Of a DNA stretch of 64,000 nt, positions 4,034 through 41,514 are shown piece by piece (the stretch's first letter is position 1; the number at the start of each line of letters is the position of its first letter). Source of the DNA: Auanema rhodensis. Its lineage: Eukaryota > Animalia > Nematoda. Made by a program: the position numbers and the translations under genes. Where the stretch lies: the NCBI GenBank assembly GCA_964057225.1, contig OZ059896.1, positions 12,524,001-12,588,000 on the forward strand, given 5' to 3'. The notes under the pieces are model-generated. The model searched no databases. It saw only the letters and a list, made by a program, of their open reading frames with translations, and was not told the DNA's origin.

Positions 4034-4044
4034 GGTTCCGTGGT

Positions 4045-7000
4045 GGCTTTATGACAGGTACACCAAAAAACTTGTACACATCACGTACACCTTACATGTA
4101 CACTCCAAATACTACTCGTACACCACTCATTTTACCTTAGTGTATATGTAGTATTTTTGAAAATTTTGTTTAAATTCAAATAATTGCTCACCTATCGTGG
4201 AAATGTTTACTATTATATGATACTTCGAATGAGTTAAGAAATTTTATCTTTTACAATATTGATAATTTGGGGTTACATGATGAATAAACTAAAATGATTT
4301 AAAACTTCGTCTTTGTTACGTATGTTTGATTATCAAGTTTAGAAAGCATCATCATCTGCAATTGAGATTTCTTCATATCTAGAAAATGTGGATATGTTCA
4401 GGGAAGACGATGATGTACTATAAATCAAATTTTTTTTCCTCAGTAGTTCAATTTTCGCTCGCTCTGCAATTTCAATGTAGTTTCTGGTCTTATTGTTACT
4501 GCTAAACTGGTTGAACTTTCTTTTTCTGAATTTAGTACCATGCTCCGGTTTTGCTTGATCTTGGAATAAACATATACAGATTTTACTTTTTTTTATCTCA
4601 AGAGTCTGTATTACTTCATTTTTTTCTTCATCAGATAATGCGAGGAAGACAGCTGTTCTGTAATTGGAATATAATACGTTAACAATATTTTTGAAAACTT
4701 ATGAACGCAGAATTTAAGTTTTTCGTTAATTTTCTTGCATTCATATATAAAACATGCGAGGTCAGCTTTGTCGAATGTAACTACAGTACAACTGAAAACA
4801 ATATTGTTCGAAAGCAACCATTTTTAACGCACCTCATATCTGTTTTTCTAAGAAGAATTCTGTACTGTTCGAATGTTAAAACAGTTAATTCATTTACAAG
4901 TGAAATAAGTATGACCCTATCAACTTTTTTATTTATTTGATTGTTAGAAAAAGCTCTCATGAATGAAATGAACTAACCTGGAATCAGCCAACTTGGAAAA
5001 TTTTCGAAAACATCCTCCGGTAAAAATTTTTCTAATCCGTATTCTCTCAATTTTTCTCGCTGCTCTCGTTTCGACATCGTAACCCATACCTCTTTTGGAA
5101 CAGCATGAGAAGTCTGATACCGGGATACTTCACCAGAAATAGCTCTTGCACAGTCGTGTATTTCATCTGAAAAATTATTATTAGTTTGTTCTAAGTTACG
5201 AGAAAAACAACTCTTGTGATATTGAAGCAAATCATTCAATAACTTTTGCGCAGGTTTTCTGCTTTGAATAATCATTTTGAAATGGGCATTTTTGGCCTCA
5301 ATTATATTTGAACTCAAAAATTGCGCAGGCCGGCCGGCCCTTATTTTTGAGAACAAACTATTTGATTCAAAAAAAATTTCAAAATTCTCTAACAGCCTAA
5401 AAATATATTCGTTGTGCATCCCTAAAAAAACAAAAAGATCTGATACCGTATTTTGGCTCTTCCTGGCGGCATACAAGCGATGAATCTAAGCATTTTTTCC
5501 GAATATTCTCTACAATTCAAACATTGTAAGATACCTCTTTTCAACATAGTCGAACCCATAAGCTAAAAATGAATTTTAAACAGTTTTTCGCAAATTGATT
5601 TACGCCTTTCTTTTCACCCCACAATTCTTTTTTGAGATTTTCAAACATATCCAACGAATTGCAGTTTTCTTTCAAATTGTTTAAGCGATGAACATCGCAA
5701 CGAATTAACATTGCATGTTTCAAAAAACAGCCCCAATTTTGAATATGAATATATTTACATCGAAGTAACTAACTGTTTTATACTGCTTAAATGAAGTATC
5801 ACCGTCATGAACAATCAACCCAACAGCTTTACTCTTGCAATACTTAGAAAACATATTATTGAGAAAAACCGTGAATGCTTCATGATCTTCTAAAGTTTTT
5901 CTATTGTGAATCATAACGGTTAGAAGAAGACTGCTGTTTTTTCCCGAAGATGAACTTCTAAACAAATTGTGCTACTCAAATACTTTTGCAATAAATTGTT
6001 AGCACCTGAATATCTCACTGATGCCAATCACAACAGTAACGAACTCCGATGACGCTAAGCTGAACGTAGTATCGAGCATTATGCAAGAACCGATTAGAGG
6101 TAGGCTGCCACTGCAATTGACAACAGAAAGATGAGAATCTGTAATGTAAATGAGTGTTTTAAAATCAGCAGTGAGCTCACTAAATGTTCGAATAGCATTC
6201 TCAATACTCATATCAAGCATATTATCTACCAGCTGGCGATGATGAACTAAATCATCAAGAAAAGGAAGGCTTTGACTAAAACATTCTAATGCAACTGGAT
6301 AGCACAGCATAAGTCTGACTTTCACAAATCTATCTTCTGAAAATCCACTGATTCACACTCCATTTTTCCGTTTGACTTACCTTGTCGCTCAATAATTGGC
6401 TGACTAAGTATTTCGAACTGATCAACAGCATCGATATATCTATTCATGACTTCCTTAAAATTCAAGGGCGATTTACGTCCTTGATTACTTTTGACGTGTG
6501 TGGCAACACTTCTGCTCAAACTTGTCAGCTATAAAAATTATTGAAAAAACGATTCAGCGGTTAAGTTTCATTTTTTGAGTTGTAACATTCACTCCTTGAT
6601 CTGCTAAAAGTGTTTTAGCCTGTCGGGTGGAGCGATGTTTTAAAGCTTGAGAGTATTGCAAAAATCAACAGACGGCTTGAGAGTATTGCAAAAATTTAAT
6701 AGTTTCGGAAGTGAAAAAATACTAACCTCGGAATAGTAAACGTAGAGTATATTTGATAACAACTCCTTCTTTGACGAAACATAAAAAAAATTTGTCAAGT
6801 TTTTTCACCTCTCTAGAGAAACCTGCATACCTGACATGTCTATTTTTATGAATTCTCAGAACAATATCCGTTTTTTTCTGAAGTCTGAATAAAAAGTCCT
6901 TCGTTCTCTTCAAGGTATTTTTCAAAAGATTTCCCTGTGATACGAACGCCATCCAAATCTAAGCATTAATTACATCACAGAAAAAAAGCACTGGCTTACT

Positions 7001-7546
7001 TGTGCCAGACCATGGCACAAAACAATCTGCTGTAATGTCATGTTGAACAATTGAATCCCTAGATCTGAAGAAGAAAAACGTTCCTTGAGGAATATCTTCT
7101 AACACAGTAAAAAAATCAATAGCTGATTCCTCATCAACCCTGAATATTAAATTAGAAATGTTAGAATACTTGAACAGAAGTGATATACCTAGTTTTGTTA
7201 ATTTTCTGTAAAGCTTCTTTCACGTTGAGATTTTTCATATTAAGAGATTGATAGAACAAAACTGCGACAGATCATCAAACACACGTGAGAAAAACGGAGT
7301 TTTAAATTAGTTTATTCATCATGTAACCCCAGGTTATCAATATTGTAAAAGATAAGATTTTGTAACTCATTCGAAGTATCATATATTAGTAAACATTTCC
7401 ACGATAGGCAGGCAATATATTATTTGAATTCAAATAAAATTTTCAAAAACACTACATAAATACCAAGGTAAAATGAGTAGTATTTGGCGTGTACATGTAA
7501 GGTGTACGTGATGTGTACATGTTTTTTGTGTACGTGTTCTAATGCC
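4045..7546 (-). mobile_element. Mutator/MULE-like DNA transposon 1 (3.5 kb) inserted in tRNA-Gln
   Basis: 9-bp TSD TTCCGTGGT (4036-4044, 7547-7555); ~250 bp TIRs starting GGCTTTATGACAGGTACAC / GGCATTAGAACACGTACAC; internal transposase. Confidence 0.92.
4330..7238 (-). pseudogene. Intron-containing MULE DDE transposase, probably disrupted; ends approximate
   Basis: Exon pieces IMLDTTFSL (D1), LIVHDGD (D2), IRCDVH (CxxH), SSNIIEAKNAHFK (E), in Mutator order, separated by short AT-rich introns. Confidence 0.8.
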
Positions 7547-7609
7547 TTCCGTGGTGTAGTGGTTAGCACTCAGGACTCTGAATCCTGCGACCCGAGTTCA
7601 AATCACGGC

Positions 7610-15665: not shown

Positions 15666-15670
15666 AAGTT

Positions 15671-19862: not shown

Positions 19863-19908
19863 ATGATTTCATTTGCAATAGTGTACACGTATCAAGTGGT
19901 GGTTTGTC

Positions 19909-20766: not shown

Positions 20767-20771
20767 ACGCT

Positions 20772-21489: not shown

Positions 21490-21957
21490 TTATATAGTAG
21501 CCAATTTATAGTCGAATACTTTATGCATAAACGCTTTAATAAAGACATCATCATTTTTCAATAGTTTAAAAAATGAACAAATGCTTTCAAATGAATTACC
21601 AGCCGACAACATTAGTATTACAAATACCACGTAGCCACCACAAGTGTATTCAATTATACGTTGTGGTTTGCAAGTATTAATTTTTACCTTTTTATATTTG
21701 GCCAGATAATTTTGAATGTACTTGTTCATTTTATATCCCAAGCTACAGAAAAAATAGGCTTGCTTGTTACGGACAAAGATGACCTGCCAATGTGTGCCTG
21801 GCTTATCATGTGTGTCAGTATTTACGACAAGTGCAAAGTTTTTTTTAGTTTTTTTTTTTCGCGTTTTGGGTAGAGTATCAGCGCTATATACACCGAGGAA
21901 TAGTTTCCGAGTGCTGGGGACAGATTGCAATAGTGAAACTATTTCAGACGAATACAT
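21490..21957 (-). CDS. Maverick adenain-like cysteine protease
   Basis: FLGVYSAD, VNTD...PGTHW, Q......CGGY; likely start at MYSSEI. Confidence 0.9.
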   Translation of the reverse strand: MYSSEIVSLLQSVPSTRKLFLGVYSADTLPKTRKKKTKKNFALVVNTDTHDKPGTHWQVIFVRNKQAYFFCSLGYKMNKYIQNYLAKYKKVKINTCKPQRIIEYTCGGYVVFVILMLSAGNSFESICSFFKLLKNDDVFIKAFMHKVFDYKLATI

Positions 21958-21996
21958 TTTAGTAGAATGATCTAGTGTAACTTTTGTATTGCGCGC

Positions 21997-22419
21997 GTGC
22001 GGTTCGATATGCCGCACCTCCTTTTGGATGTCAACTCTATTCAATGGACAACACTTTTAAATCAACAAATGGGTGGCGCCCCATTTAGCGGAATGATGTT
22101 TCAACGTGGAATGCAGAGGGGTCATGGTTTGGGTGCTATTTTGGCAACTTTGGCATCATTTCTACCACGCATCATTCAATCACCTATAGCCCAAAATCTC
22201 ATCAATGCCGGAAGAAACGCCTTATCCAGTGCTGTAAGCAATAGTCCAGTTGTAAATTCACCTCTTGGCGGACAGTTGCTGAAAACTGGTAATGAAATTG
22301 TCGATGGGGTGCTGAAAGGCGATAATATCAAGGAAACTCTTAAACTCCGGCCGGCAAGCTATACGAGATCTTACCGGCTTGGGCAAACGGCGACGACGCA
22401 AAACCACAAAACCTCATAA
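21997..22419 (+). CDS. Maverick PW-like/core protein (3' end possibly frameshifted)
   Basis: QMGG...QRGMQRGHGLG followed by an amphipathic helix, directly upstream of the capsid gene. Confidence 0.7.
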   Translation: MRFDMPHLLLDVNSIQWTTLLNQQMGGAPFSGMMFQRGMQRGHGLGAILATLASFLPRIIQSPIAQNLINAGRNALSSAVSNSPVVNSPLGGQLLKTGNEIVDGVLKGDNIKETLKLRPASYTRSYRLGQTATTQNHKTS

Positions 22420-22459
22420 GCGGTTGTGCATCACTCGTGAGCGGTCGTTTCACATTTAA

Positions 22460-23794
22460 ATGGCTAAATTGATAGATTCAAAATCAGCACAAGCCCTTTT
22501 ACCTAATATCAACTATGGTGATATACCTGCGTCGGCATTAGGTGTTGAATCCACTCGTACTGTACAAGTCCCTTTGAAAAATACTTTTCTTCCTCAAGGA
22601 CCATGGGAATTTGTTATAGCTCAAAATTCCAAATCATTCCTCAATCTGAGAAGATGTTGGTTGAATGTAAAATTTAAAATTGTAACCACAAACGGTGATC
22701 CAGTACCAGACAACCTTGTTTTTGCACCATGTCAACAATTTGCTGCCAGTTTAATACATTCGTATCATTTGAAAATTGGCGATGTTAGCGTGTATGACTC
22801 TACCGTGAATCATGCCTATAAAACATATATCGAGAATATTTTAATGTATAGCAACGATGTTAAAGAGAGCAAACTTGCCATATCAGGCTATTATGCTGAT
22901 AGATATATAGATAATGCATCCAGTGCTGGATTTAGAACGCGTCAAACGCTTGTAAAAAATGGCATATTGTGTGAGATGGCTGCTCCCGTCAGTATCGACC
23001 TATTTAATCAAGAGCGACTGTTTGTAAACTATTCAAAAATGGAGCTAACTGCATATCCAAACCGTGATAACTTTTTAATTGACACTCTAGGCTGGAATAA
23101 TGAAAACAAGGATACTACATTAAAGGAGGAGTTTCCAAATTTGAAAGTAGATATCAGCGATGTACATTTACTCATTCAAGAGTTTGATCTAAACGCTGGA
23201 TTAGCTATGGCTATAGAAGATAAACTCGCAAGGGATCGAATACACTACCCCATGACATCAGTGAAAATGCGCTCTTATTTCATAGAAGGAGGCCGCTTGG
23301 ATTCACCTAATAATATATTATTCACGTCTCATACACCAAAACGTGTTGTAGTAGGTCTTGTCGGCGCACACGCTTATAATGGTACTTTTAAACATTCGCC
23401 ATTCAACTTTAAACCGTTTGATTTGAAAAATATATACTTGACGCTCAACAATAGGTTAATACCTACCTGTCCTCATAATTTAGAATGGCGATCTTCCTAT
23501 GCCACAGCATATATTGACATGCTGGAAGGTTTGGGACTTGGTCGTACAGATTCATCCAATGGTATTACACCAGCAATGTATAAAGCTGGTTTCACATTTT
23601 TTGTATTTGATATTTTTCCTACTGTGCATTCGTCAGAGTTATTTGATGTTATACGACAAGGTAATGTAGCCTTGAAATTGGAATTTGGTCAACAAACGCC
23701 GCAAGAGGGCTTATATGCAATTGTTTATGCAGAGTATGACTCTATTCTTTCAATTGACAACAATCGTGCTCCATACATTGATACCAGTTTGTAA
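22460..23794 (+). CDS. Maverick major capsid protein (double jelly-roll), intact 444 aa
   Basis: GPWEF, YKTYIE.L.Y, DLFNQER, PKRVVVGLV..AYNG....PFNF, GFTFFVFD, YAEY...ID..R. Confidence 0.92.
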   Translation: MAKLIDSKSAQALLPNINYGDIPASALGVESTRTVQVPLKNTFLPQGPWEFVIAQNSKSFLNLRRCWLNVKFKIVTTNGDPVPDNLVFAPCQQFAASLIHSYHLKIGDVSVYDSTVNHAYKTYIENILMYSNDVKESKLAISGYYADRYIDNASSAGFRTRQTLVKNGILCEMAAPVSIDLFNQERLFVNYSKMELTAYPNRDNFLIDTLGWNNENKDTTLKEEFPNLKVDISDVHLLIQEFDLNAGLAMAIEDKLARDRIHYPMTSVKMRSYFIEGGRLDSPNNILFTSHTPKRVVVGLVGAHAYNGTFKHSPFNFKPFDLKNIYLTLNNRLIPTCPHNLEWRSSYATAYIDMLEGLGLGRTDSSNGITPAMYKAGFTFFVFDIFPTVHSSELFDVIRQGNVALKLEFGQQTPQEGLYAIVYAEYDSILSIDNNRAPYIDTSL

Positions 23795-23934
23795 TGTATG
23801 TAATAAATTCTTTAAAAGATTTAAGAATAAAATTTATTAATACAACTATTTTTAAAAATAAATACATGTACAATGATAAAATTTTATAAATACAAATATA
23901 TACAAGATGATAAAAATTTATAAATTCAAATATA

Positions 23935-26115
23935 TTATTCACAATAACCGTAGGGTAAAGTACTATAATCTTGTAGATAACAAAGTTTATCCATTACGAC
24001 TTTAGTACTTTTTGTCATATCCATTGTGGATATGGCACCGAGTTGCCTCTTTAACAAGGTTGTATTGGTTTTTAAAACCAATTTTTCTCCATCCATAACG
24101 AGTCCGCGAACCAGTCGCTCCATACTTTCAAAGTTTACCACTGACGCTGCCGTGTGGTCCAACGTCTGAAAATTATAAAATTATTTGAAAAGTCAAAGCT
24201 CGTTCTTACCACTCCCTTTGCCTTGTTACATATTTCACATCACCAGCTGCATTTACAAGTTTATAACTATAAACTTTTGCCGCTGGTGATACAAACTTGG
24301 TCATTGACCAACCATCGGGTATTTCAGAGGTTAGTTTACCTAACCATTCACCCTTCATATCCTCAATTGGATCTGGCTCATCCAGGCACCTTTGATAAAT
24401 TAGTGAATCCGTGTCTAAATAATGTAAGTTTAAATTGAATACAAAGTATAAAATTACCTGTATACACCAAATTCTTTCCAATTTTCTCCATTGCCTTATA
24501 CAATAGTAGCCTTGCATGAGCGGTTGTATAGGCCGCAATAGCTACATTTGTAAAAGGCGGTGGTGCCAAATGTGAATCCTCTGGTACTGTTGTGCAGTAC
24601 GCAACATTATCCACAATTTTGAACCCGGTGAGTTCCCTTGCAGGATCAGTAATGATCCTACCAATTTCCGGGTCCTCAACACCAATAATCTTGGTTTGGG
24701 CTTTATCAGGTCTTTGACCCATTTTACCCCAGACACTATATACCTTCACCAGGCATCAGGCTTGGCTGCACCGGTCTTTCATCAAACACATACATTTCAA
24801 TATTCATTGCCTGGCTAATTACAGCCTCTCGCTTTGATTGCTGCACCTTGCTGATGGCATTCATGATGGCAACGCCATCCAAATGCTCCCTTCTACGGAA
24901 ATCCATAAATATGGATCCCTTTTCAAAAGATGGGTGCTCTATTGATAAACAAAACAGTGCTTTTTGTTTATCTGGCACACCACTTTCAGCAAGGCACCGA
25001 TCAAGAAACTCATTAAATAGCCGCGGCATGACAACATGCATTGGCTCATTAATGGCTTCCAAATGTGGGAACGTGAGCGATCTAACGACCACGTTGGTGA
25101 ACCGACCAGTTCGTTTTATGCGTCGGTGTGACCACTATAATACATATTTTTTATAATGGTTATACGCTTTTAATTTAAATATAAATAATTTTTGTTCATA
25201 ACTTTTAATAAATTTACTTTTCTTTAAATTATTTTTATATTCTTTAATTAAAAATAAATGGCATTTGATTTTTTAATATAAAGATTTTTTTTTCAACTTT
25301 GAAAAAACTTTTATAAACATTTGTTAATGTTTAAAAATAAATGAAAGGGTCAAGATGGTGTTTTATTTTTTTACTAGTTCAAAATGTTTGAAATATTTAT
25401 AATTTGTAAGAATTCAAAATTGGTTGAAAGAAAGATATATAGTGAGATGAAATGTAAATATTTTAAAATGAATGCTGTTCAAAAGAATGAAAATGTAAAT
25501 TTCAAAATACTTGCAATTTGTTTGATAAAAGATATAGATTGAGATGAAATGTAAAGATGAGAGAGAGAGAATTTTATGAATGCAATTGAAAAAGAGAAAT
25601 AAATTTCAAAATGTTTTCAAAATATGCAACTGGAGCAAGAGAAAATTTCATGTTTCAAAAGATATATTATGAAATAATATGTAAATAAAAGATCGCACCT
25701 CTATTTTACAGACATCGTTGAATGTCGCTCCATATCCGACTTGCCCTCCACTGGTTGATGGGGTAGCGGGATCCCATTCTCTTAAAAAGAAAAAAAAAAC
25801 TAAATGTTATAATTTTTAATATCGCTTACTCATCACTGTCATCCGAGGTTATTACTTCAATAACCCTTGATGATGAGGGCCCACTGTTAAAAGTGGGTGA
25901 TGTGGGCTCACAGAGCTCGATCCCACCAGCCTCGGTAAACTTTATACGTTTACTAAAAAACAAAATATATATAAAGATTCAAAATTGTGTTAAATTACCT
26001 GAGCTGATTAATCTCTTCATAATCAAATCCTAGCTCTTCACATAAACGTTTATAACTAAAAAAAGAAAAAGTTTACAAACAAATAATCAAAAAGACACAA
26101 CCTATTAGCAGCCAT
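23935..26115 (-). pseudogene. Spliced protein-primed DNA polymerase B with internal deletion
   Basis: Hand-spliced in-frame exons from ATG 26115 (QVGYG, ..SKVQQS), then WGKMGQ, NVAIAAYTTAHARLLLY, YT^DTDS (intron 24415-24457), KVYSY, TLPYGY; exonuclease and motif A absent. Confidence 0.88.
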
Positions 26116-26312
26116 TGTACCTTGATATAATGAATACATCAGTCTACACATTGCTGTTGGCATTGTAATTTGTTATGTAACATGGATTTAGGTACAGCTG
26201 TCAAAACTAGCAGTTGCGATAAACTTTAAAATAAATAAGCATATTGAATACATCTGTTTTTATTGTCCCCGTCGGATTAATTTTTGTTATTCCTTCTTAT
26301 TTAATTAACTTT

Positions 26313-26467
26313 ATGCGTGGCGTTGAGGTCAGCGCAACTGTTTGTTAATCTTATTGTATTTACCTTCAATGTGTGCTCTATAGAGTTATTGTATTGTTAT
26401 ATTAGTAAAATAAAGTTTAAAACTAATCTTTTATTATAATTTGAAACCTTTACTTGTTAGAATAAAT
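26313..26467 (-). repeat. Right arm of long-range inverted repeat
   Basis: Reverse complement of 11763-11931; ~200 bp upstream of the polB start. Confidence 0.9.
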
Positions 26468-26666: not shown

Positions 26667-29535
26667 ACCCATAACAAGTACGGTGAACAAAATTATCTAC
26701 ATGCAAAAATTTTATTGATCTTTAAAAATAAAAACAGTAAAAAAAAGACACAATATTATAAAATAATAAACAAAATAAGTAAACAAACATAATTAATAAA
26801 TATAATAAATGAATAAAGTAATAAAATTTTAAAACAAATTAATATATTTAAAATTTAAATATAATTTATATATATAAAGGTTAAATATAATTTAAATATT
26901 TAAAATTTAAATATAATGAGGCAAAACGATTGCTCTCAACAAATCATGATTTACCCATAAGTACAAAACAGGCAAGTTCATGCAGCATATTTTTTCAATT
27001 GCTTTCTTTTTTAGATAAATAGTTTATCTCGTAATGTCGAACATGTAAAATCTCGATGTGGGAGAAGATAGATAACAGACCCATCAAAATTAATGGATCG
27101 TTTTGTAAACCATAATTCACATTTGGAGGATATGCTTCCACTATCTTTATACCGTAGCGAAAATGGAGGCAAGATATTTATTTTAGATTTGTAAGAACTG
27201 AAACTATTTTATATTCAGATGTGGATATGAAATTTGTTATTGGCTATCCTACAGCAATAAAATGTTTTTTAAAGATTTGCCTACACTTGGCGAGTTAGAG
27301 GAACATCGAACTATGGTAGAACAGTTTATGAATTTACAGGAAAATGAAGCGGATATCATTTTTAGTAAGCCATCAATTAAAACATTTACTTTCTCTTTCG
27401 AAAATCTCTTTTACTTTTACTCTTACTTTACCTCATATACATACAGACATTTACAATGGGTGAATAAATCAGGATCTCTGCTTATAATTAGATCTAGTAT
27501 TCTAGTGGATACTACGTTTGACTTAAGTGACATGTACTTGACCGTTGCTCTTGGATTGAGTGAAACATTTTTGTAAGTATGATTTATATAACTTGTGATA
27601 GTCTGATGCTTGTGATAGTTTGATGTTCAGAACAAAAGCTTCTGGTAAAAACAATGGAATGATTCTGGCAGTTCTATTTCATACAAAAAAAATAAGGAAG
27701 CCCATGAGTACTTTGCCAATTATTTAAATCAGAAGTTTTTTCTTTTTCTTTTGAAAAAACAATTGGGGCAATTTTAACTGATGAAGAAGACTCTTTAACT
27801 GTACATAAATCGTAAATTTTAAATCACATTTTGGTTTTAGAATTAACTTCAGGGAGTAAACATGAAAGATGCCATTCACATTCGTTGCGATATGCACCGT
27901 CTACAGAATATAAAAGATATTATAGGTTCCTGAGAACAATTAGACAGAATAAAAAATATTCTATATGGTTTGAAAGAACAGGTTTGTAATATAATTTGAA
28001 GTTTAGACGAAAAAAACGATTAAGAGACCAGAAGGTGTACTTTTATTGAAGGGAGTTCTAGGCAGTCTTAATAGATCTTCATATGATCGGCTTTGGGAAA
28101 TTTTACAAACCACGTGTGAAGGACAATTAAAGGATTGGTATGGCTCTGGATTTTAATCTATATAAATTACAACTTAGGCTAAACAAAAATAAAGATTCAC
28201 ATTTTCTGCATAATTCATTATATTCAAAGTTTCTTGCTGGCTGGACTACACAGTTTGTAACTACAAACTTGTTAGAAAGCAGGAATAACTTGTTGAAGAA
28301 TCATATTACTAGCTCTTTACCTGCTTATCGTGTTGCTGACATATTGTTGAATCTGCATGAAGGTTAGTTCAAAAAAATATTATAGTTTGTGTGAAATTTC
28401 AGAAGAAGTGAAGAACCGAATTCGAGCAATTCGAAATGTATCTGATACAATATGTACTCATAATACTATCAGTGATTTTGAATGGAAGACATTAACGCAA
28501 ATGGAAAAAAGCAATGTTTTGAAAAATTTTAGATTAGAAGATTATTTTTCAATTGATAAATACATATAACCAGTATCCATCCTGGGTGTTGAAATGTAAA
28601 AAGACAAACTTGAAAAAATTACAAAACCTTTTTATACATTATAGGTGAGGGCAAAATTTCAGAAGAAATTTTCCTCAAATCTATTGAACAACTTGTGCTA
28701 CACAACAGTCGTGAAAATGACAAAATGTTTTTCGTGATTGATGACAAAAACTTTACGAAGTAAAAAAATTTATGATTACAATCCAATTATGAGCAAATTC
28801 GTTTAATTATTTCAGCCCTGTTCCTGTTATACGGAAAGACGACGTCCTTCGCTGTTATTCCATAAGATGCATGAAAAACGTTAATTACTCTTATTATGTT
28901 TGCAAACACATGTAAGTCACCTCGTAAATAGAAGCCAAAATATTTTTTAGGTTCATTGTTCTTGATAATCAAGAGGAGGAGATAAAAAAATTAATTATAG
29001 CTGCTATGGATAGCAGGCGTTCAAGTCGAACAAGCAAGCAATGGAGATCTCAAAGAATTAGTGTTAACGCCGGAAGTAAATACAACAAAAGGAAATTTAC
29101 GACATTTTCCAAGCATAACAACCATAGAACATTTGACTGCTTGGTCAAGTTAGTTTAAAAAACTAATAAGTTTATATTTTGAAATTCAGCAACTCGCTAA
29201 ATAAAAATAATATAACTATTAACGAAGAATCTCTCAGGAACACATACGTAGAATTGGGTACAATAGTGTAACTGATCAAAAGAAAAAAATCAGTAAAATG
29301 AGTTAACATTTTTTCAATGTCTTATTCGTTGCTACTACTAACCAGTAATAAAAATTGAAATAATTGAAACATATTTGATTGGTAAAACAGAGGTTTGTTG
29401 AAAAGATAATATGGGTGATTGTGGCTGGGTCATAACCGTGTACTTTTGAAATGGGTGCTCTTGATTTAATTCATTTGGGTACCGAATGGGTGCATCTTGG
29501 GTCATAAACACTTGGGTCAATGTTGAAAGGCCTCC
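26667..29535 (+). mobile_element. MULE-like transposon 3, left end missing, transposase pseudogene
   Basis: ILVDTTFDL, IRCDMH, TTNLLESRNNLLK; TGGGT-rich right end finishing ..GGCCTCC joined to array spacer; boundaries approximate. Confidence 0.8.
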
Positions 29536-30167
29536 GTTACCCAAACGAGCCACGCTTAGAAAATGAGGCTGATATAACACGTTTTTTGCTCCTATCCTGA
29601 TTGATTGCTTCAGAGACATTTCTGTCTTATCTCATTATATTCTCTATTTTGTTTTTTTTGCAAAATTTTTATTAATGTATAATTCAAACTGTAATCTCTT
29701 GTGATTAGATTGTTAATCGTTATATCTGTAAACGTTTCTTGCAAAATAGCAAGTAGAGTGTTCAGTTGTACCTACTTAACAAAGAAAGTAGAAGAACACA
29801 GAGCAAAAAAAGTGCGGAAAAGTCGTTATCTCGTTAACATCAGTTTCACTGCCCAAAACTCTGTTTCTTAATGTCCGAGGTCATATGATGATATCTAATT
29901 TTGCACTTAGTTGATGAAAATCGAACAAGATTCTTCTCAATTGACCACAACTACAGCACCAAACTTGGATAACTACAATCTGCTGAGTTCAAACTTTGAG
30001 AAAGTTAGAATTTCGAATCTCCTCTCAATCATTTTGTTCCTTCTTCTTTCTGTTTTGTTTTACACAAAAGGAAGGATTGAATCTTATATATGACAATTCT
30101 CTTGTGAGAGATCACAGTGGTTCCGTGGTGTAGTGGTTAGCACTCAAGACTCTGAATCCTGCGACCC

Positions 30168-33100
30168 GGTAAACTGACAAGTTTACCAAACTTTAGGTTT
30201 ACCAAACTTTAGGTTTACCAAACTAGGTTTACCAAGAAATAGACAAGTTTACCATAGTTATATGGTATACCAGGTTTACCAGGTTTACCAAAGTATACCC
30301 AATATCAATTAGTGAACACTTTGCAAGGTTTACCAAGTATACCAAATTAAACAAAATAGATTAGAAAGAGTTTTGAGTATTTTGAAGAAGTTTTCAGGTA
30401 TAACAAACAAATATGATAAAGATGTGAAAATGTAAGTTTTTTTTTCAAATGATTGATGAGTAAATTTGAAAGTATAAGTTTTAAAAAGATATAGTAAGAA
30501 AAGTCAAAATCTAAATCATCCTAATCTCAAAATTCTTGTAAACTGAAATAGAATTTATTATCAAAGAACCTTAATTCATATGAAATTTCTAAAATGTTTT
30601 ATCTAGACTGATATAGAACTTATTAATAAAATAAATATTAATATTTGACAAGGTTGTCTTATAAGTGTTAAAAATATTGTTCATATTTGAGAAAAATAAG
30701 TTCATAAGTTAAACATAAGTTCATTATTACGCGTGTTGAACCCTTCGGTATACTATATTAATGACACCTACCATCAATTGGATGACAATTGAGCGTCATA
30801 TATAGTTCATAAATAAACAAAAATTGTGAACATCATCATGAACATAAAAAATAATTTGATTTAATCAAACCAATTTTAAACTTCACGTTTAACGCTTACC
30901 TCAACCTTTCAACTATGAATGCTTTTGAACTCCTTTTCGATAACAGCATTTCTGTTCTTGATTGCTGATTTATTGGGCATGCATCAGGGTAAAAATTTTT
31001 TTAGAATTTCAAAAAGACAATTCATTGTCTACAAGGATATTACTCGGGATATCTTCACTCCATGGAACAGAAAAGGTTAGTTTTATATTTTTAAGTTTCT
31101 ATATATAGTTTGTTTCAGGGGGGGTGGTCTGCCTGCTATTAACAACAAGACCTCTTCCAGAGGTTGTAAACTGGTTGACGGGCAATACATCCTTTGCTCC
31201 AAGGATGATTGTGCCGAATTTACTTACAGAACCATCCGCTGTAAGAAACCCGATATGGATCTCACCAAAGAGGTATTTTGTTTATTTAAGATTTACAATT
31301 AATTTTTGTTTTAGATTCATATGATCGTACAAGGCAAGGAAAAAATTATTGAACCCGTTTTAATAATTTACAACGTGCAGGCAAGTTCTCTCATTTTGCT
31401 TTTTGCTCTATGTACTATATTTAGGAATCTCTGCAAAACTTTGTGCCCGCGAAGCAGAGAATATTGCCTTCCGTTAGCCAAGATGTCAAAAATGTTCTGG
31501 AAAACAGAACAACAGCTGCTGCTAAGGAAATGCTCAAGGATTCTGAGATCAGCTCTAGTCAGGCAAGTGTGAAAGTTTCATGTTTTTTCTACATTTTCAT
31601 TTTTAGCTGACCAGTCTTGCTCGCAGTGTTAGCACCCACATTAAGTCGGGCACTGGCAAGCGATCACCCAGCGATATCAACAAGCTTGTTGATAGATTCG
31701 CGAATGGCAGCATGAAGGTAGAGCATATGGAGCCAATTAAAGTAGAAAGAACAGGTTAAATTTTATTTTTATTTGTTTTAATAGTAATAATTTACATACT
31801 AGATTGTGGTGTAGCGTTCTGTCAGATTGTTGGATACCCAGCAGCTTTCAAACATTTTTGTGCGTCATTGCCAACGGTTGAAGACATGGATGACCACCTC
31901 CGCTTTGTTAAAAGCATTTAATATTTGCCAAAACAAGAGGCAAAGGAAGCTTTTGGTGAGTATTTTATCATTGAAACTTAATTTTTTTCATATTTCAGTG
32001 AGGATTTTAAACCAAGTAAATGCTTCTGGAGCCCTTCCAATAATAGGCAGCATTATAATGATTGATACGACGTTCTCAATCAGTAGTGGTGAGTACATCA
32101 CGTTAGCTCTTGGTGTATCCGACATGTTTACGTAAGTTTTCATTAATCATATCTTTTTTTTAAATTTTGTATATTCAGGTCGAAAAAATCTGGAAAAAAT
32201 GCAGGCATAATGCTTGCATGTATGGTACATAGTACCAAACATGCTTCCAACCATGAAGCTTTCTCAGCATTTTTAAATAAGATGCTCTCACAATATGGAA
32301 AACACAAAAGAATCGCTGGTTTGTGTCATGATGGAGAAGATGATTTTAAAGCATACAATACTGTAAGAAATTTTTTTACATAAGGTTTAATTGTTCTTTA
32401 TTTTAGGGATCATTTTTAAAAGATGCTGTGCCGCTGAGATGTTCCGTGCACCGAATGGAGAATATCAAAAGCACATTCGGCAAGGACGATGATGCTGAGA
32501 GAAAGGAACACATTCTCCATAAAATATTTGGGAGAAAAAAAGAGGTATACTTGATATTGTTTTTAAACACTATTTTTATGTTTTAAGACTGAATATGGAA
32601 CGATCATGAGGAAAGGGGCTCTATCATCACTAAACCGTGATGAATATGAAAGGAAAATCCAAGATATTGTAAGGAATTGTGGAGAAAGAACTCGACAATG
32701 GTTGGTTTTTTTTAAATTCTTTTATTTTTTTTTAATTTAGGTTTATTTTACCAACAAGGACGATTTATATCAAACCAATAGTTTGATTCAAAAATTGAGA
32801 GCTGGGCAAAGCCAACAATTTTTTTCAACAAACTTGTTGGAGTCGAAGAATTCTCAATTGAAAGCTAGAATACCTCAACCTATTCCGGCTTATCAAGTTT
32901 TAGAGAAAATGCTGCAACTACATGAAGGTAATCAAAACATATTGAAAATAACTAGTAATTTTGTTATAGAAGAAATTAAAGAACGAATTGGAGCTGTTCA
33001 TCAGAAATCCGACAAACTGGCCACTCATTTTCATGTTGAAAACCATGAGTGGTTAGTAATGACACGCATTGAAAAAATGAATAAGCTCAAACTTTTCGGT

Positions 33101-34334
33101 TTGAGTGATTTCATTTTTGAAAATTCGTTGTCAAGCTATCCATCATGGATGAGTGAGCCAGTCGGGACCAGCAATGCGGACATGTTTTTTGAAACTGTTC
33201 AGCGTTTGGAGGTATTTCCTGCTGCAAAGGCAGGCATATATTTCACCAAGGACAGTACGGGAGCGTAAGCTAAGATTTTTTATTTTGAGTTTATCATTGT
33301 TATTCCAGATTGGGATGTGTCAATGAGACCAATAATGAGCTTGTATGCTCCAGTCCGGGATGCACGCAACGAAATTGCCCTAAGCATGCTCTATGCCAAC
33401 ACAGGTTTCTTAAGTTTGAGAAACAAAATATTATATTTTTGTTCCAGGCTAGCTGTCTTCATATCGTTAGAAAACGAAACAAAGAAAAGAGCGATCGTGG
33501 AAAATCTGGAACGAAAAAGAAATGAGAGAACAGTGCGAGATGTACAAGCTGAGCAATTGAGACCAGCTGACGGATCAAAGTTTGATCACAGAAGATTTGG
33601 TTCTCAATTTTCGAAAACGAACCGTAAGAGAAACTACTACGACATAGAGTAGGTTTCAAATACCTCGATTTGTAATCAATTTTCATTATAGCTCAACGGC
33701 CGATTCAGATGACGAGATTCTGATACCAGGGCCAGGGGGACAACAGGAACGCTACTACTCACTTTCATAAAGTTCCGTAGCTACAAAAATCAAACAACAA
33801 GAGCATTAATAAGGTCAGTAAACTAGCATATTTAAAATTTAATATTTCATTTCATTTACAATATTGATCCATCACACACTCTCAGCAATTTGAAAATCAT
33901 TATCAAAAGGTCAGTTAGAACGATTACTTAACATCTTTAATGAACACTTTTCATGTATGCAACAGCTCCACAAAAAGAAAACATGCGAAACAGAAGGTTC
34001 TTTAAGAATTAAACTTCCATTTTTTTAACACATCATGTTCAATTAATATAAAATTCTTTTTCCTGATATTATTATCACTACCTTGAAAAAAAAAACATAC
34101 AATTTCAAACTACAACTTTTTGTATTTTGGTATACTTAGTATAAAAATATTTTTTTGGTAAACTTGGTGAATTTGGTATACTTGGTAAACCTTGCGAAGT
34201 GTTCACAAATTAATATTGGGTATACTTTGGTAAACCTGGTAAACCTGGTATACCATATAACTATGGTAAACTTGTCTATTTCTTGGTAAACCTAGTTTGG
34301 TAAACCTGAAGTTTGGTAAACTTGTCAGTTATCC
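30168..34334 (+). mobile_element. Mutator/MULE-like DNA transposon 2 (4167 bp) inserted in tRNA-Gln
   Basis: 9-bp TSD CTGCGACCC (30159-30167, 34335-34343); ~180 bp TIRs GGTAAACTGACAAG / GGATAACTGACAAG made of GTTTACCA repeats. Confidence 0.95.
30915..33780 (+). CDS. Multi-exon MULE DDE transposase (ends approximate, integrity unverified)
   Basis: IMIDTTFSI, LCHDGE, LRCSVH (CxxH), STNLLESKNSQLK, SWIM-like C....C....C.....C.H; many short GT-AG introns. Confidence 0.78.
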
Positions 34335-35166
34335 CTGCGACCCCAGTTCAAATCTCGGTGGAACCTTCAAGTTTTGCATTTTGTTTTGACCGATATATGT
34401 TTCACAGATTCACTTTAGTTTTTGTCTGGAACTTTGAGTCTTCGAAAATGAATATTTACTATACTAGCAAGCAGAAGAAAAACTTATATTAGTTCATTGT
34501 TTCTTTTAAATTTAAATTAATTTATTTTTTCACTGTCAAATCGGCAAGCACATGCTGCACATGTGCGAGCTATTCGAGTGACCAATGCCCAAACGAGCCA
34601 CGCTTAGAAAATGAGGCTGATATAACACGTTTTTTGCTCCTATCCTGATTGATTGCTTCAGAGACATTTCTGTCTTATCTCATTATATTCTCTATTTTGT
34701 TTTTTTTGCAAAATTTTTATTAATGTATAATTCAAACTGTAATCTCTTGTGATTAGATTGTTAATCGTTATATCTGTAAACGTTTCTTGCAAAATAGCAA
34801 GTAGAGTGTTCAGTTGTACCCACTTAACAAAGAAAGTAGAAGAACACAGAGCAAAAAAAGTGCGGAAAAGTCGTTATCTCGTTAACATCAGTTTCACTGC
34901 CCAAAACTCTGTTTCTTAATGTCCGAGGTCATATGATGATATCTAATTTTGCACTTAGTTGATGAAAATCGAACAAGATTCTTCTCAATTGACCACAACT
35001 ACAGCACCAAACTTGGATAACTACAATCTGCTGAATTCAAACTTCAAGAAAGTTAAAATTTCGAATCTCCTCTCAATCATTTTGTTCCTTCTTCTTTCTG
35101 TTTTGTTTTACACAAAAGGAAGGATTGAATCTCATATATGACAATTCTCTTGTGAGTGATTACAGT

Positions 35167-35238
35167 GATTCCATGGTGTAGTGGTTAGCACTCAAGACTC
35201 TGAATCCTGCGACCTCAGTTCAAATCTCAGTGGAACCT
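35167..35238 (+). tRNA. tRNA-Gln(CTG), variant copy, probable pseudogene
   Basis: 72 nt; mismatches in acceptor, anticodon and T stems. Confidence 0.8.
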
Positions 35239-36044
35239 TCAAGTTTTGCATTTTGTTTTCACCGATATATGTTTCACAGATTCACTTTAGTTTTTGTCTG
35301 GAACTTTGAGTCTTCAAAAATGAATATTTACTACACTAGCAAAAAGAAGAAAACCTTATACTAGTTCATTGTTTCTTTTAATTTTAAATTTAATTATTTT
35401 TTTCACTGTCAAATCGGCAAGCACATGCTGCACATGTGCGAGCTATTCGAGTAACCGATGCCCAAACGAGCCATGCTTAGAAAATGAGGCTGACATAACA
35501 CATTTTTTACTCCTACCCAGATTGATTGCTTTAGAGACATTTCTGTCTTATCTCATTATATTCTCTATTTTGATTTTTCTAAATTTTCATTAATGTATAA
35601 TTCAAAATGTAATTTCTTGTGATCAGATTGTTGATCGTTATATCTGTGAACGTTTCTTTCGGAATAGCAAGTAGAGTGTTCAGTTGTACCCACTTAACAA
35701 AGAAAGTAGAAGAACATATATATTTAGAGCAAAAAAAGTGCGGAAAAGTCGTTATCTCGTTAACATCAGTTTCACTGCCCAAAACTCTGTTTCTTAATGT
35801 CCGAGGTCATATGATGATATCTAATTTTGCACTTAGTTGATGAAAATCAAACAAGATTCTTCTCAATTGACCACAACTACAGCACCAAACTTGGATAACT
35901 ACAATCTGCTGAGTTCAAACTTCGAGAAAGTTAAAATTTCGAATCTCCTCTCAATCATTTTGTTCCTCCTTCTTTCTTTTTTGTTTTACACAAAAGGGAG
36001 GATTGAATCTCATATATGACAATTCTCTTGTGAGAGATTACAGT

Positions 36045-36116
36045 GGTTCCGTGGTGTAGTGGTTAGCACTCAAGACTCTGAATCCTGCGACCCCAGCTCA
36101 AATCTCAGTGGAACCT
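36045..36116 (+). tRNA. tRNA-Gln(CTG), variant copy (B-box GCTCA)
   Basis: 72 nt; CAAGA anticodon-stem mismatch, T-loop mutation. Confidence 0.82.
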
Positions 36117-36933
36117 TCAAGTTTTGCATTTTGTTTTCACCGATATATGTTTCACAGATTCTCTTTAGTTTTTGTCTGGAACTTTGAGTATTCGAAAATG
36201 AATATTTACTACACTAGCAAGCAGAAGAATACCTATTACTAGTTCACTGTTTTTTTTTTTAATTTTTTTCGGTATATTTATTTTTTCACTGTCAAATCGG
36301 CAAGCACCTGCTGCACATGTGCGAGCTATTTGAGTGACCGATGCCCAAACGAGCCACGCTTAGAAAATGAGGCTGACATAACACGTTTTTCATTCCTACC
36401 CAGATTGATTGCTTTAGAGACATTTCTGTCTTATCTCATCATATTCTCTACTTTGACTTTGATTTTTCTAAAATTTCATTAATGTATAATTCAAAATATC
36501 AATTCTTGTGATCAGATTGTTAATCGTTATATCTGTAAACGTTTCTCTCGAAATAGCAAGTAGAGTGTTCAGTTGTACCCACTTAACAAAGAAAGTAGAA
36601 GAACATATATAATTAGAGCAAAAAAATTGCGGAAAAGTCGTTATCTCGTTAACATCAGTTTCACTGCCCAAAACTCTGTTTCTTAATGTCCGAGGTCATA
36701 TGATGATATCTAATTTTGCACTTAGTTGATGAAAATCGAACAAGATTCTTCTCAATTGACCACAACTACAGCACCAAACTTGGATAACTACAATCTGCTG
36801 AATTCAAACTTCAAGAAAGTTAAAATTTCGAATCTCCTCTCAATCATTTTGTTCTTTCTTCTTTCTGTTTTGTTTTACACAAAAGGGAGGATTGAATCTC
36901 ATATATGACAATTCTCTTGTGATAGATTACAGT

Positions 36934-37005
36934 GGTTCCGTGGTGTAGTGGTTAGCACTCAAGACTCTGAATCCTGCGACCCCAGCTCAAATCTCAGTGG
37001 AATCT
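36934..37005 (+). tRNA. tRNA-Gln(CTG), variant copy (B-box GCTCA)
   Basis: As the previous copy plus an acceptor-stem change (GGAATCT). Confidence 0.8.
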
Positions 37006-37811
37006 TCAAGTTTTGCATTTTGTTTTCACCGATATATGTTTCACAGATTCACTTTAGTTTTTGTCTGGAATTTTGAGTCTTCAAAAATGAATATTTACTA
37101 CACTAGCAAAAAGAAGAAAACCTTATACTAGTTCATTGTTTCTTTTAATTTTAAATTTAATTATTTTTTTCACTGCCAAATCGGCAAGCACCTGCTGCAC
37201 ATGTGCGAGCTATTCCAGTGGCCGATGCCGAAACAAGCCACGCTTAGAAAATGAAGCTGATATAACACGTTTTTTGCTCCTACCCAGATTGATTGCTTTT
37301 GAGACATTTCTGTCTTATCTCATTATATTCTCTACTTTGATTTTTCTAAATTTTCATTAATGTATAATTCAAAATGTAATTTCTTGTGATCAGATTGTTG
37401 ATCGTTATATCTGTGAACGTTTCTCTCGAAATAGCAAGTAGAGTGTTCAGTTGTACCCACTTAACAAAGAAAGTAGAAGAACATATATATATAGAGCAAA
37501 AAAATTGCGGAAAAGTCGTTATCTCGTTAACATCAGTTTCACTGCCCAAAACTCTGTTTCTTAATGTCCGAGGTCATATGATGATATCTAATTTTGCACT
37601 TAGTTGATGAAAATCGAACAAGATTCTTCTCAATTGACCACAACTACAGCACCAAACTTGGATAACTACAATCTGCTGAGTTCAAACTTCGAGAAAGTTA
37701 AAATTTCGAATCTCCTCTCAATCATTTTGTTCCTCCTTCTTTCTTTTTTGTTTTACACAAAAGGGAGGATTGAATCTCATATATGACAATTCTCTTGTGA
37801 GAGATTACAGT

Positions 37812-37883
37812 GGTTCCGTGGTGTAGTGGTTAGCACTCAAGACTCTGAATCCTGCGACCCCAGTTCAAATCTCGGTGGAACCT
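37812..37883 (+). tRNA. tRNA-Gln(CTG), variant copy
   Basis: Intact A/B boxes; one anticodon-stem and one T-stem mismatch. Confidence 0.88.
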
Positions 37884-39662
37884 TCAAGTTTTGCATTTTG
37901 TTTTCACCGATATATGTTTCACAGATTCTCTTTAGTTTTTGTCTGGAACTTTGAGTATTCGAAAATGAATATTTACTACACTAGCAAGCAGAAGAAAACC
38001 CTATATTTGTTCATTGTTTCTTTAAATTTTAAATTTAATTATTTTTTCACTGTCAAATCGGCAAGCACCTGCTGCACATGTGCGAGCTATTCGAGTGACC
38101 GATGCCCGAACAAGCCACGCTTAGAAAATGAGGCTGACATAACACGTTTTTCACTCCTACCCAGATTGATTGCTTTAGAGACATTTCTGTCTTATCTCAT
38201 TATATTCTCTACTTTAACTTTGATTTTTCTAAAATTTCATTAATGTATAATTCAAAATATCATTTCTTGTGATCAGATTGTTGATCGTTATATCTGTAAA
38301 CGTTTCTCTCGAAGTAGCAAGTAGAGTGTTCAGTTGTACCCACTTAACAAAGAAAGTAGAAGAACATATATATTTAGAGCAAAAAAAGTGCGGAAAAGTC
38401 GTTATCTCGTTAACAACAGTTTCACTGCCCAAAACTCTGTTTATTGTCATTCTACTTGCTATTTCGAGAGAAACGTTTACAGATATATATGAATATTTAC
38501 TACACTAGCAAGCAGAAGAAAAGCTTATACTAGTTCATTGTTTTTTTTTTAATTTTTTTCGGTATATTTATTTTTTCACTGTCAAATCGGCAAGCACCTG
38601 CTGCACATGTGCGAGCTATTCGAGTGACCGATGCCCAAACGAGCCACGCTTAGAAAATGAGGCTGACATAACACGTTTTTCACTCTGTAGAGTTGTACCC
38701 ACTTAACAAAGAAAATAGAATAACATATATATTTAGAGCAAAAAAAGTGCGGAAAAGTCGTTATCTCGTTAACATCAGTTTCACTGTTCAAAACTCTGTT
38801 TATTGTCACTCTACTTGCTATTTCGAGAGAAACGTTTACAGATATATATGAATATTTACTACACTAGCAAGCAGGAGAGAACCTTATACTAGTTCATTGT
38901 TTTTTTTTAATCTTTTTCGGTATATTTATTTTTTCACTGTCAAATCGGCAACACTAGCAAACAGAAGAAAACCCTATATTTGTTCATTGTTTCTTTTAAT
39001 TTTAAATTTAATTATTTTTTTCACTGCCAAATCGGCAAGCACCTGCTGCAAATGTGCGAGCTATTCGAGTGGCCGATGCCGAAACAAGCCACGCTTAGAA
39101 AATGAAGCTGATATAACACGTTTTTTGCTCCTACCCAGATTGATTGCTTTTGAGACATTTCTGTCTTATCTCATTATATTCTCTACTTTGATTTTTCTAA
39201 ATTTTCATTAATGTATAATTCAAAATGTAATTTCTTGTGATCAGATTGTTGATCGTTATATCTGTGAACGTTTCTCTCGAAATAGCAAGTAGAGTGTTCA
39301 ATTGTACCCACTTAACAAAGAAAGTAGAAGAACATATATATATAGAGCAAAAAAATTGCGGAAAAGTCGTTATCTCGTTAACATCAGTTTCACTGCCCAA
39401 AACTCTGTTTCTTAATGTCCGAGGTCATATGATGATATCTAATTTTGCACTTAGTTGATGAAAATCGAACAAGATTCTTCTCAATTGACCACAACTACAG
39501 CACCAAACTTGGATAACTACAATCTGCTGAGTTCAAACTTCGAGAAAGTTAAAATTTCGAATCTCCTCTCAATCATTTTGTTCCTCCTTCTTTCTTTTTT
39601 GTTTTACACAAAAGGGAGGATTGAATCTCATATATGACAATTCTCTTGTGAGAGATTACAGT

Positions 39663-39734
39663 GGTTCCGTGGTGTAGTGGTTAGCACTCAAGACTCTGAA
39701 TCCTGCGACCCCAGTTCAAATCTCGGTGGAACCT
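39663..39734 (+). tRNA. tRNA-Gln(CTG), variant copy
   Basis: Same sequence as the 37812 copy. Confidence 0.88.
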
Positions 39735-40552
39735 TCAAGTTTTGCATTTTGTTTTCACCGATATATGTTTCACAGATTCTCTTTAGTTTTTGTCTGGAAC
39801 TTTGAATATTCGAAAATGAATATTTACTACACTAGCAAGCAGAAGAATACCTATTACTAGTTCACTGTTTTTTTTTTTAAATTTTTTTCGGTATATTTAT
39901 TTTTTCACTGTCAAATCGGCAAGCACCTGCTGCACATGTGCGAGCTATTTGAGTGACCGATGCCCAAACGAGCCACGCTTAGAAAATGAGGCTGACATAA
40001 CACGTTTTTCATTCCTACCCAGATTGATTGCTTTAGAGACATTTCTGTCTTATCTCATCATATTCTCTACTTTGACTTTGATTTTTCTAAAATTTCATTA
40101 ATGTATAATTCAAAATATCAATTCTTGTGATCAGATTGTTAATCGTTATATCTGTAAACGTTTCTCTCGAAATAGCAAGTAGAGTGTTCAGTTGTACCCA
40201 CTTAACAAAGAAAGTAGAAGAACATATATAATTAGAGCAAAAAAATTGCGGAAAAGTCGTTATCTCGTTAACATCAGTTTCACTGCCCAAAACTCTGTTT
40301 CTTAATGTCCGAGGTCATATGATGATATCTAATTTTGCACTTAGTTGATGAAAATCGAACAAGATTCTTCTCAATTGACCACAACTACAGCATCAAACTT
40401 GGATAACTACAATCTGCTGAGTTCAAACTTTGAGAAAGTTAAAATTTCGAATCTCCTCTCAATCATTTTGTTCCTTCTTCTTTCTTTTGTGTTTTACACA
40501 AAAGGGAGGATTGAATCTCATATATGACAATTCTCTTGTGAGAGATTACAGT

Positions 40553-40624
40553 GGTTCCGTGGTGTAGTGGTTAGCACTCAGGACTCTGAATCCTGCGACC
40601 CGAGTTCAAATCTCGGCGGAACCT
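40553..40624 (+). tRNA. tRNA-Gln(CTG), intact
   Basis: Fully paired cloverleaf: GGTTCCG/CGGAACC, CAGGA-CT CTG AA-TCCTG, CCGAG-TTCAAAT-CTCGG; T-run terminator downstream. Confidence 0.97.
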
Positions 40625-41442
40625 TCAACTTTTGCATTTTGTTTTCACCGATATATGTTTCACAGATTCTCTTTAGTTTTTGTCTGGAACTTTGAGTATT
40701 CGAAAATGAATATTTACTACACTAGCAAGCAGAAGAATACCTATTACTAGTTCACTGTTTTTTTTTTTTAATTTTTTTCGGTATATTTATTTTTTCACTG
40801 TCAAATCGGCAAGCACCTGCTGCACATGTGCGAGCTATTTGAGTGACCGATGCCCAAACGAGCCACGCTTAGAAAATGAAGCTGATATAACACGTTTTTT
40901 GCTCCTACCCAGATTGATTGCTTTTGAGACATTTCTGTCTTATCTCATCATATTCTCTACTTTGACTTTGATTTTTCTAAAATTTCATTAATGTATAATT
41001 CAAAATATCAATTCTTGTGATCAGATTGTTAATCGTTATATCTGTAAACGTTTCTCTCGAAATAGCAAGTAGAGTGTTCAGTTGTACCCACTTAACAAAG
41101 AAAGTAGAAGAACATATATAATTAGAGCAAAAAAATTGCGGAAAAGTCGTTATCTCGTTAACATCAGTTTCACTGCCCAAAACTCTGTTTCTTAATGTCC
41201 GAGGTCATATGATGATATCTAATTTTGCACTTAGTTGATGAAAATCGAACAAGATTCTTCTCAATTGACCACAACTACAGCACCAAACTTGGATAACTAC
41301 AATCTGCTGAGTTCAAACTTCGAGAAAGTTAAAATTTCGAATCTCCTCTCAATCATTTTGTTCCTCCTTCTTTCTTTTTTGTTTTACACAAAAGGGAGGA
41401 TTGAATCTCATATATGACAATTCTCTTGTGAGAGATTACAGT

Positions 41443-41514
41443 GGTTCCGTGGTGTAGTGGTTAGCACTCAGGACTCTGAATCCTGCGACCCGAGTTCAAA
41501 TCTCGGCGGAACCT
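41443..41514 (+). tRNA. tRNA-Gln(CTG), intact
   Basis: Identical to the 40553 copy. Confidence 0.97.

Follow-up and report, generated by a model that had tools for sequence, protein, structure and literature searches.

Site-specific integration into multicopy RNA genes allows a transposon to multiply without killing its host, and among DNA transposons such integration is documented essentially only for Dada, with Pokey as a weaker case. The target-specific DNA transposons named in the Dada papers are Dada itself, Pokey and some Cryptons (PMC3706591, PMC8869645). Dada elements are DDE transposons that enter multicopy small RNA genes (tRNA, 5S, U1 and U6), with a target that differs by family; the sites that they hit are concentrated around the A box and the anticodon, and the transposase is distantly related to those of MuDR, hAT, P and Kolobok (PMC3706591, PMC8869645). 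Their insertion is accompanied by a 6-7-bp duplication, they have no terminal inverted repeats, they carry short subterminal repeats that echo the target, and a DxxH motif follows the second D of the transposase (PMC3706591). Here we describe E1, a transposon that interrupts a tRNA-Gln(CTG) gene in a 64,000-nucleotide stretch of the nematode Auanema rhodensis (contig OZ059896.1, positions 12,524,001 to 12,588,000 of the forward strand; this whole stretch is the window, and all positions are counted from its first letter), together with two relatives, E2 and E3, in the same window. E1 is of the Mutator (MuDR/MULE, Mutator-like element) type, for which a target-site duplication (TSD) of 8-11 bp, typically 9 bp, and inverted repeats of about 100-500 nt are characteristic. 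Known Mutator elements favor the 5' ends of genes transcribed by RNA polymerase II (Pol II) and open chromatin (compare PMC7337890 and bioRxiv 10.64898/2026.05.18.725947). E1, E2 and E3 represent a divergent branch of this superfamily, and we consider it on balance probable that the lineage prefers the bodies of genes transcribed by RNA polymerase III (Pol III), each family most likely with a sequence of its own.

E1 interrupts its tRNA-Gln(CTG) gene cleanly, having been inserted within the gene body by a 9-bp staggered cut. Its features and the reference copies of the gene are:

30168..34334, + strand: E1, Mutator-type (MULE) DNA transposon of 4167 bp, inactivated copy of a multi-copy family
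30119..30167, + strand: 5' part of tRNA-Gln(CTG), gene positions 1-49, 46/47 match against intact copies
30159..30167, no strand assigned: left TSD copy CTGCGACCC, 9 bp, single copy in intact paralogs
30168..30354: left terminal inverted repeat, tip GGTAAACTGAC, GTTTACC present eight times, copies 1 and 2 at +14 and +30
34164..34334: right terminal inverted repeat, tip ...GTCAGTTATCC
34335..34343: right TSD copy CTGCGACCC
34344..34366, + strand: 3' part of tRNA-Gln, positions 50-72, with the B box and the 3' strand of the acceptor
35167..41514, + strand: array copies of tRNA-Gln(CTG) without an insertion, which serve as reference for the empty site

The inverted ends of E1 are 171-187 nt long and 96% complementary over 158 nt, with GG...CC tips, and one extra 16-nt repeat of the motif is found in the left arm only. 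The perfect 9-bp duplication CTGCGACCC around the element corresponds to tRNA positions 41-49, immediately 5' of the B-box-like AGTTCAAATCT. Excision in silico, i.e. joining of 30119-30167 with 34344-34366, restores a 72-nt tRNA-Gln(CTG) that is called Gln(ctg) by ARAGORN and is identical to the neighboring intact copies at 37812 and 39663, after a one-base adjustment of the register by hand in this comparison. The empty form, an uninterrupted tRNA with a single 9-mer, is present in contigs of four public runs with three labeled organisms (joint 30157>34334, with 10 shared letters), and homology among the tRNA-Gln loci ends at 34366, where the contigs of the public runs have loose ends. An earlier reading of the DNA made from its letters alone (hereafter the sequence-only reading) had given the coordinates, the length, the GG..CC inverted repeats and the 9-bp duplication before the B box, all of which were correct apart from small corrections, and had described the tRNA-Gln gene as split by the element, which the restored gene and the empty form in the four runs bear out.

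Two further elements of the same lineage are found in the left part of the window:

4036..7555, - strand: E2, second MULE family of the same lineage; the element itself is at 4045-7546 and the outer limits include the TSDs
27015..29532, + strand: E3, third family, a 5'-truncated pseudogene

E2 splits another copy of tRNA-Gln. Its TSD TTCCGTGGT, a perfect 9 bp at 4036-4044 and 7547-7555, covers positions 3-11 of the gene, on the 5' border of the A box, and its inverted ends of about 290 nt are 84% alike. In its coding part the core exons 6-13 are open. E3 contains stops inside conserved exons, and its 5' part is missing. The ends of all three elements are built on the same plan, with a common GG tip and a family-specific motif of 6-7 nt of which the first two copies are located at +14 and +30 and further ones follow; inverted ends in this lineage span 150-300 nt. 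The motif is GTTTACC in E1 (8 per end), GTACAC in E2 and in an element from another Auanema, and GACCCA in E3. Because the end motifs differ and the transposases of E1 and E2 are only about 30-55% identical in conserved exons, these two belong to separate families and entered their tRNA genes independently. The second element at 4045-7546, with its different inverted repeats, had likewise been recognized in the sequence-only reading. No other copies of the E1, E2 or E3 end families were detected within the 64-kb window.

A relative in another sample ends inside a 5S rRNA gene. The 1.5-kb Logan contig L002 (1-1501, run SRR22013515) carries a 76-residue transposase fragment, P0002, and the 3' end of an E3-like MULE. 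The contig was found via protein similarity alone, with the flank ignored, and it comes from another run. The tip of the element, ...GTAAAGGCC, ends at 1472 and is followed by 29 nt of an antisense 5S rRNA gene, and the end of E3 resembles that of this 5S-inserted element. In reverse complement 28 nt of the flank can be aligned with a human 5S rRNA oligonucleotide, with 26/28 matches (PMC13345412); this oligonucleotide served as a TFIIIA binding probe (PMC13345412). Rfam returned no 5S call on L002, where the 29-nt remnant is too short to score.

The transposase gene of E1 is made up of short exons:

30915..33652, + strand: E1 transposase gene, about 14 short exons, introns of 40-70 nt, TTTCAG-like acceptors

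A D-D-CxxH-E transposase had been proposed from the sequence alone, and all four motifs are indeed present in conserved exons: the first D lies in IMIDTTF (near 32060), the second in LCHDGED (near 32325), the CxxH motif is CSVH (near 32440), and the E lies in TNLLESKN (near 32840). These motifs align with their counterparts in E2, E3, L002 and P0001, a transposase from another Auanema. The block of the first D reads IMIDTTF, IMLDTTF or IMVDTTF, that of the second D LCHDGED or similar, and that of the E TNLLESKN, SNIIEAKN or TNIIESRN, while the CxxH block is CSVH in E1, CDVH in E2, CDAH in P0001 and CDMH in E3. When E1 is read from its probable start at 30915, a stop follows after 17 codons of exon 2, and exon 3 is frameshifted, 5 bases having been lost behind 30964 and 1 base within the G run 31119-31124. 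At these two points copies in public runs are longer, by five bases behind 30964 and by one behind 31124, and with these bases the frame stays open across both exons and on into the Cys-rich conserved region. The E1 copy, with two frameshifts of which these other copies are free, is dead; it lost its reading frame after integration.

E1-like sequence is multi-copy in all four public runs, and copies with an intact frame occur in three labeled organisms. In the four runs contig depth over the 3' half of E1 (32400-34000) is 2-5 times that over the 5' half (30200-32400), which suggests internally deleted derivatives of the E1 family. Alternative flanks of the E1 tips were not seen in the public runs among the matches listed.

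The catalytic motifs and the ESM Atlas neighbors, together with the long inverted ends and the duplication of 9 bp, place E1, E2 and E3 in a small branch of the Mutator (MuDR/MULE) superfamily that transposes by cut and paste, is highly divergent and is confined to nematodes. An exhaustive HMMER search with the 175-residue E exon, the largest one, against 1.84 billion representative proteins retrieved P0001, P0002 and one spurious match. P0001, with 629 residues from Auanema sp. JU1783, is the sole full-length homolog. In a tblastn comparison of P0001 with the window, E1 was found at E = 2e-50 and E2 at E = 2e-72, in addition to a third stretch at 27015-28750. The feature neighbors of P0001 in the ESM Atlas are almost all PF10551 MULE, FAR1 or SWIM clusters (0.95, with 179 features shared); PF10551 is present in 9 of the 10 named feature neighbors and in nearly all structure neighbors (template-modeling (TM) score up to 0.83, on the side of the match). 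The assignment to Mutator and not to Dada, which the sequence-only reading had made, is therefore supported by the TSD, the inverted ends, the CxxH motif and these neighbors.

At the N-terminus, residues 38-131 of P0001 match DUF7747 with 27.2 bits against a cutoff of 25, and exon 2 of E2 does so with E = 5e-4. By features, this N-terminal domain has GCM, FAR1, DBD_Tnp_Mut and FLYWCH as its neighbors, with values of 0.80-0.92 that amount to a lead, and we count all four among the WRKY-GCM1-type DNA-binding domains that Mutator transposases typically carry. As a lead from these model-based neighbors, DUF7747 may resemble a DNA-binding domain of the WRKY-GCM1 type.

A search of the PDB with the sequence of P0001 gave no match, and Pfam found nothing relevant on ten E1 exon pieces. 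Word-indexed protein searches with P0001, with a profile of P0001 and the exons of E1, E2, E3 and L002, and with a profile of the P0002-type exon each returned only the query. A scan of metagenome contigs for the E1 tip yielded three matches, all of them due to chance and situated in GC-rich DNA of no relation.

The gene of P0001 lies on a contig of Auanema sp. JU1783 (L001; CALQYR020003942.1, 1-3319) that consists of precisely one E2-like element, from tip to tip, and has no flank, which suggests that the assembly broke at both tips owing to repeated flanks. The inverted ends of this element are 146 nt long and 86% alike. In the annotation of the contig the transposase is split into two genes of 629 and 104 residues.

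The tRNA-Gln gene hit by E1 is part of a tandem array at 29534-41514 in an AT-rich window (about 34% G+C). The array is composed of units of 878-890 bp with one 72-nt tRNA-Gln(CTG) each, in agreement with the 72 bp in a unit of about 880 bp that had been read from the sequence. The tRNAs of the array are unequal in Rfam: the copies at 40553 and 41443 score 67 bits and the rest 37-50 bits. The weaker ones mostly have CAAGA instead of CAGGA in the anticodon stem, which results in an A-C mismatch, and the copy hit by E1 has it too. Many of the array tRNAs are probably weak genes or pseudogenes, to judge from these scores and the mismatch.

To the left, the window contains decayed array and a 15-kb element at 11647-26467. 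An old, diverged tRNA-Gln fragment (gene positions 19-62) at 10980-11023 lies in a decayed unit, 73-75% identical, on the left side of this element. The array thus once spanned the left half of the window in its entirety. Downstream of E2, the tRNA-Gln ends at about gene position 60 and is followed by some 770 bp unrelated to the unit (7605-8373), after which homology resumes at position 84; neither inverted ends nor a duplication were seen at this interruption. Beyond 42 kb (42000-49430 and 58831-64000) the window contains a tRNA-less 528-bp satellite that corresponds to spacer positions 154-629 plus a 40-nt inverted piece, and this satellite is split by a 9.4-kb insertion at 49431-58830.

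Could these insertions reflect a real preference of the lineage for Pol III genes? The tRNA makes up 7-8% of the unit, and both complete MULEs, E1 and E2, are located in it, which has p = 0.005 under a uniform null. Two independent tRNA hits had been taken to suggest a preference by the sequence-only reading. That the hits come from two families and that the relative L002 lies in a 5S gene speaks for this proposal, and we infer from these insertions that a real preference of the lineage for Pol III genes is rather likely.

On the other hand, several results weigh against this reading. The tRNA is a GC-rich island that holds 66% of the unit 9-mers with 7 G+C and 20% of those with 5 G+C, and under a GC-matched null, calculated for the array unit only, both tRNA hits have p = 0.13. 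A taste for GC-rich 9-mers, which the sequence-only reading had set against its own proposal, thus raises the chance probability of both hits from p = 0.005 to this value, within the unit only. The verified informative insertions number three, and E1 and E2 among them were chosen for being in tRNAs. There is one flanked copy per family; since no same-family, same-site repeat is at hand, specificity for a sequence is a guess. Further flanked copies were not obtained, as the protein searches gave only P0001 and P0002 and L001 is without a flank. The right tip of E3 (...GAAAGGCC) at 29532, its only surviving one, joins array spacer at unit position of about 283 and not a tRNA, and apart from the tRNAs Rfam finds no RNA gene in the array that could account for the position of E3. 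As to the superfamily, no significant hmmscan match to Pfam MULE (PF10551) or Transposase_mut (PF00872) was obtained on the E1 exons or on full-length P0001; a Pfam search had been suggested as a check when the sequence was first read. The flank of E3 starts with TCCGT, like the 5' end of the tRNA, so that a later deletion may have taken place.

These points also form the core of the alternative that survives best, namely that there is no targeting and that ordinary MULEs, with at most a taste for GC-rich or open DNA, were kept in a repeat region tolerant of transposons, where tRNA arrays abound and insertions do no harm, the tRNA hits being due to chance, to retention and to the attention that readers pay to tRNA junctions. 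The GC-matched value for both hits inside the unit and the spacer flank of E3 speak for this alternative. It is also in line with the abundance of transposon remains in the window (the 9.4-kb insertion, the 15-kb element and the decayed array) and with the state of E1, E2 and E3, all of which are dead or old copies. It is harder to reconcile with L002, which was found blind to its flank in another run and ends inside a 5S gene, and with the distribution in the window, where both complete MULEs lie in the 8% tRNA part and both non-MULE elements lie outside it, in spacer or satellite. We regard chance and retention as rather unlikely.

A second alternative accepts the preference and explains it by tethering: the transposase would be drawn to TFIIIC, TFIIIB, Pol III or nucleosome-free chromatin and would cut the exposed DNA beside the A and B boxes irrespective of its sequence. 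Each TSD indeed borders a promoter box on the 5' side, that of E2 (positions 3-11) the A box and that of E1 (41-49) the B box, the 5S junction is located at the 3' edge of the internal control region bound by TFIIIA, and it is established that Ty1, Ty3 and the Dictyostelium elements TRE and DGLT-A reach tRNA genes via Pol III factors. The target of E1 may, however, have been a weak Pol III gene, given the anticodon-stem mismatch and the low Rfam scores of several array tRNAs, and the CCGT found within the first 5 nt of the flank in E2, E3 and L002 hints at a sequence cue. Moreover, these tethered elements land on one side or the other of the gene and not at fixed points within it, whereas insertion into the gene body is typical of the sequence readers Dada and R2 (PMC3706591, PMC8869645). 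The sequence-only reading had preferred Pol III machinery over sequence on the grounds that the two TSDs differ. This conclusion does not follow, since E1 and E2 belong to different families, each possibly with its own target, and the difference between their TSDs is no argument against reading of sequence. Taken together, we consider tethering without sequence reading quite improbable.

A composite or transduplicated origin of the two tRNA halves is ruled out by the clean duplications and by a rebuilt site equal to the neighboring genes.

The reading that we prefer, a lineage with a preference for Pol III genes, can be put in mechanistic terms as follows. E1 entered the tRNA-Gln gene by an ordinary staggered-cut reaction, which produced the 9-bp duplication, and later lost its frame. 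The lineage would prefer the transcribed bodies of multicopy Pol III genes (tRNA and 5S), and each family would most likely read its own short sequence inside such genes, a strategy as in Dada. We favor reading of a family-specific short sequence, to which we assign somewhat more than half of the probability given to the preference as such, because a point insertion in the gene body is Dada-like and because the differing duplications come from different families. A CCGT lies near the tip, within five bases, in the flanks of E2 (at 7547, TTCCGT...), E3 (at 29533, TCCGT...) and L002 (at 1473, CGTCTCCG; CCGT if one shared C is counted). Noticed post hoc in these few flanks, it is a possible target cue and, as a lead, a third reason to favor sequence reading. 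An extended version, in which this nematode branch of Mutator came independently of Dada to enter the bodies of Pol III genes site-specifically, family by family, with the target read by DUF7747, we put forward tentatively, as possible and short of probable.

What would follow from such a preference? If it is true, the strategy evolved at least twice in the group of CxxH/DxxH transposases, and it helps to explain the load of mobile elements in the tRNA and 5S arrays of this nematode genome. The E1-type and E2-type transposases would hit two points of one 72-nt gene, which would make them a clean system for the study of target choice by DDE transposases and for the engineering of targeted insertion. 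The lineage would provide a compact cut-and-paste system with a built-in safe-harbor address in which the long inverted ends and the 9-bp duplication are kept. If the preference is not real, E1 is merely a dead transposon in a repeat array.

The use of tRNA genes as safe landing places, known from compact genomes, would be shared by the E1 lineage with Ty1, Ty3 and the Dictyostelium elements TRE5-A and DGLT-A. Tethering via Pol III factors is established for this group of elements, including the TRE family. They differ from the E1 lineage in that they are retroelements and insert beside the gene via contacts with TFIIIB, TFIIIC or Pol III. Among cut-and-paste elements, Pokey, a piggyBac element in the 28S ribosomal DNA of Daphnia, has a preferred site in a multicopy RNA gene and is, as far as it is treated in the Dada paper, also found elsewhere (PMC3706591). 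It differs from the E1 lineage in superfamily, in its TTAA target and in the use of a Pol I gene.

Compared with Dada, E1 and E2 have a 9-bp TSD, inverted ends of 170-290 nt and a CxxH motif, by which they are set apart according to the published description of that superfamily. Membership in Dada is excluded by this duplication, by the long inverted ends and by CSVH/CDVH in place of DxxH. The inverted ends of the elements show no convincing echo of the tRNA. No report of a Mutator-type element that targets tRNA or 5S genes was found in searchable full text, which mostly excludes subscription journals.

The closest relatives are the MuDR/MULE elements, such as maize MuDR, Jittery, Hop, Phantom and Muta1. 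They resemble E1 in the 9-bp TSD and in long inverted ends with repeated subterminal motifs, and the nearest ESM Atlas clusters of P0001 carry PF10551, FAR1 or SWIM; a WRKY-GCM1-like N-terminal domain may be a further common trait. The lineage differs from them in that it is too divergent for Pfam MULE, has one full-length relative among 1.84 billion representative proteins and carries a DUF7747 N-terminus. Unlike those of known Mutator elements, the insertions of E1 and E2 are located in the bodies of Pol III genes.

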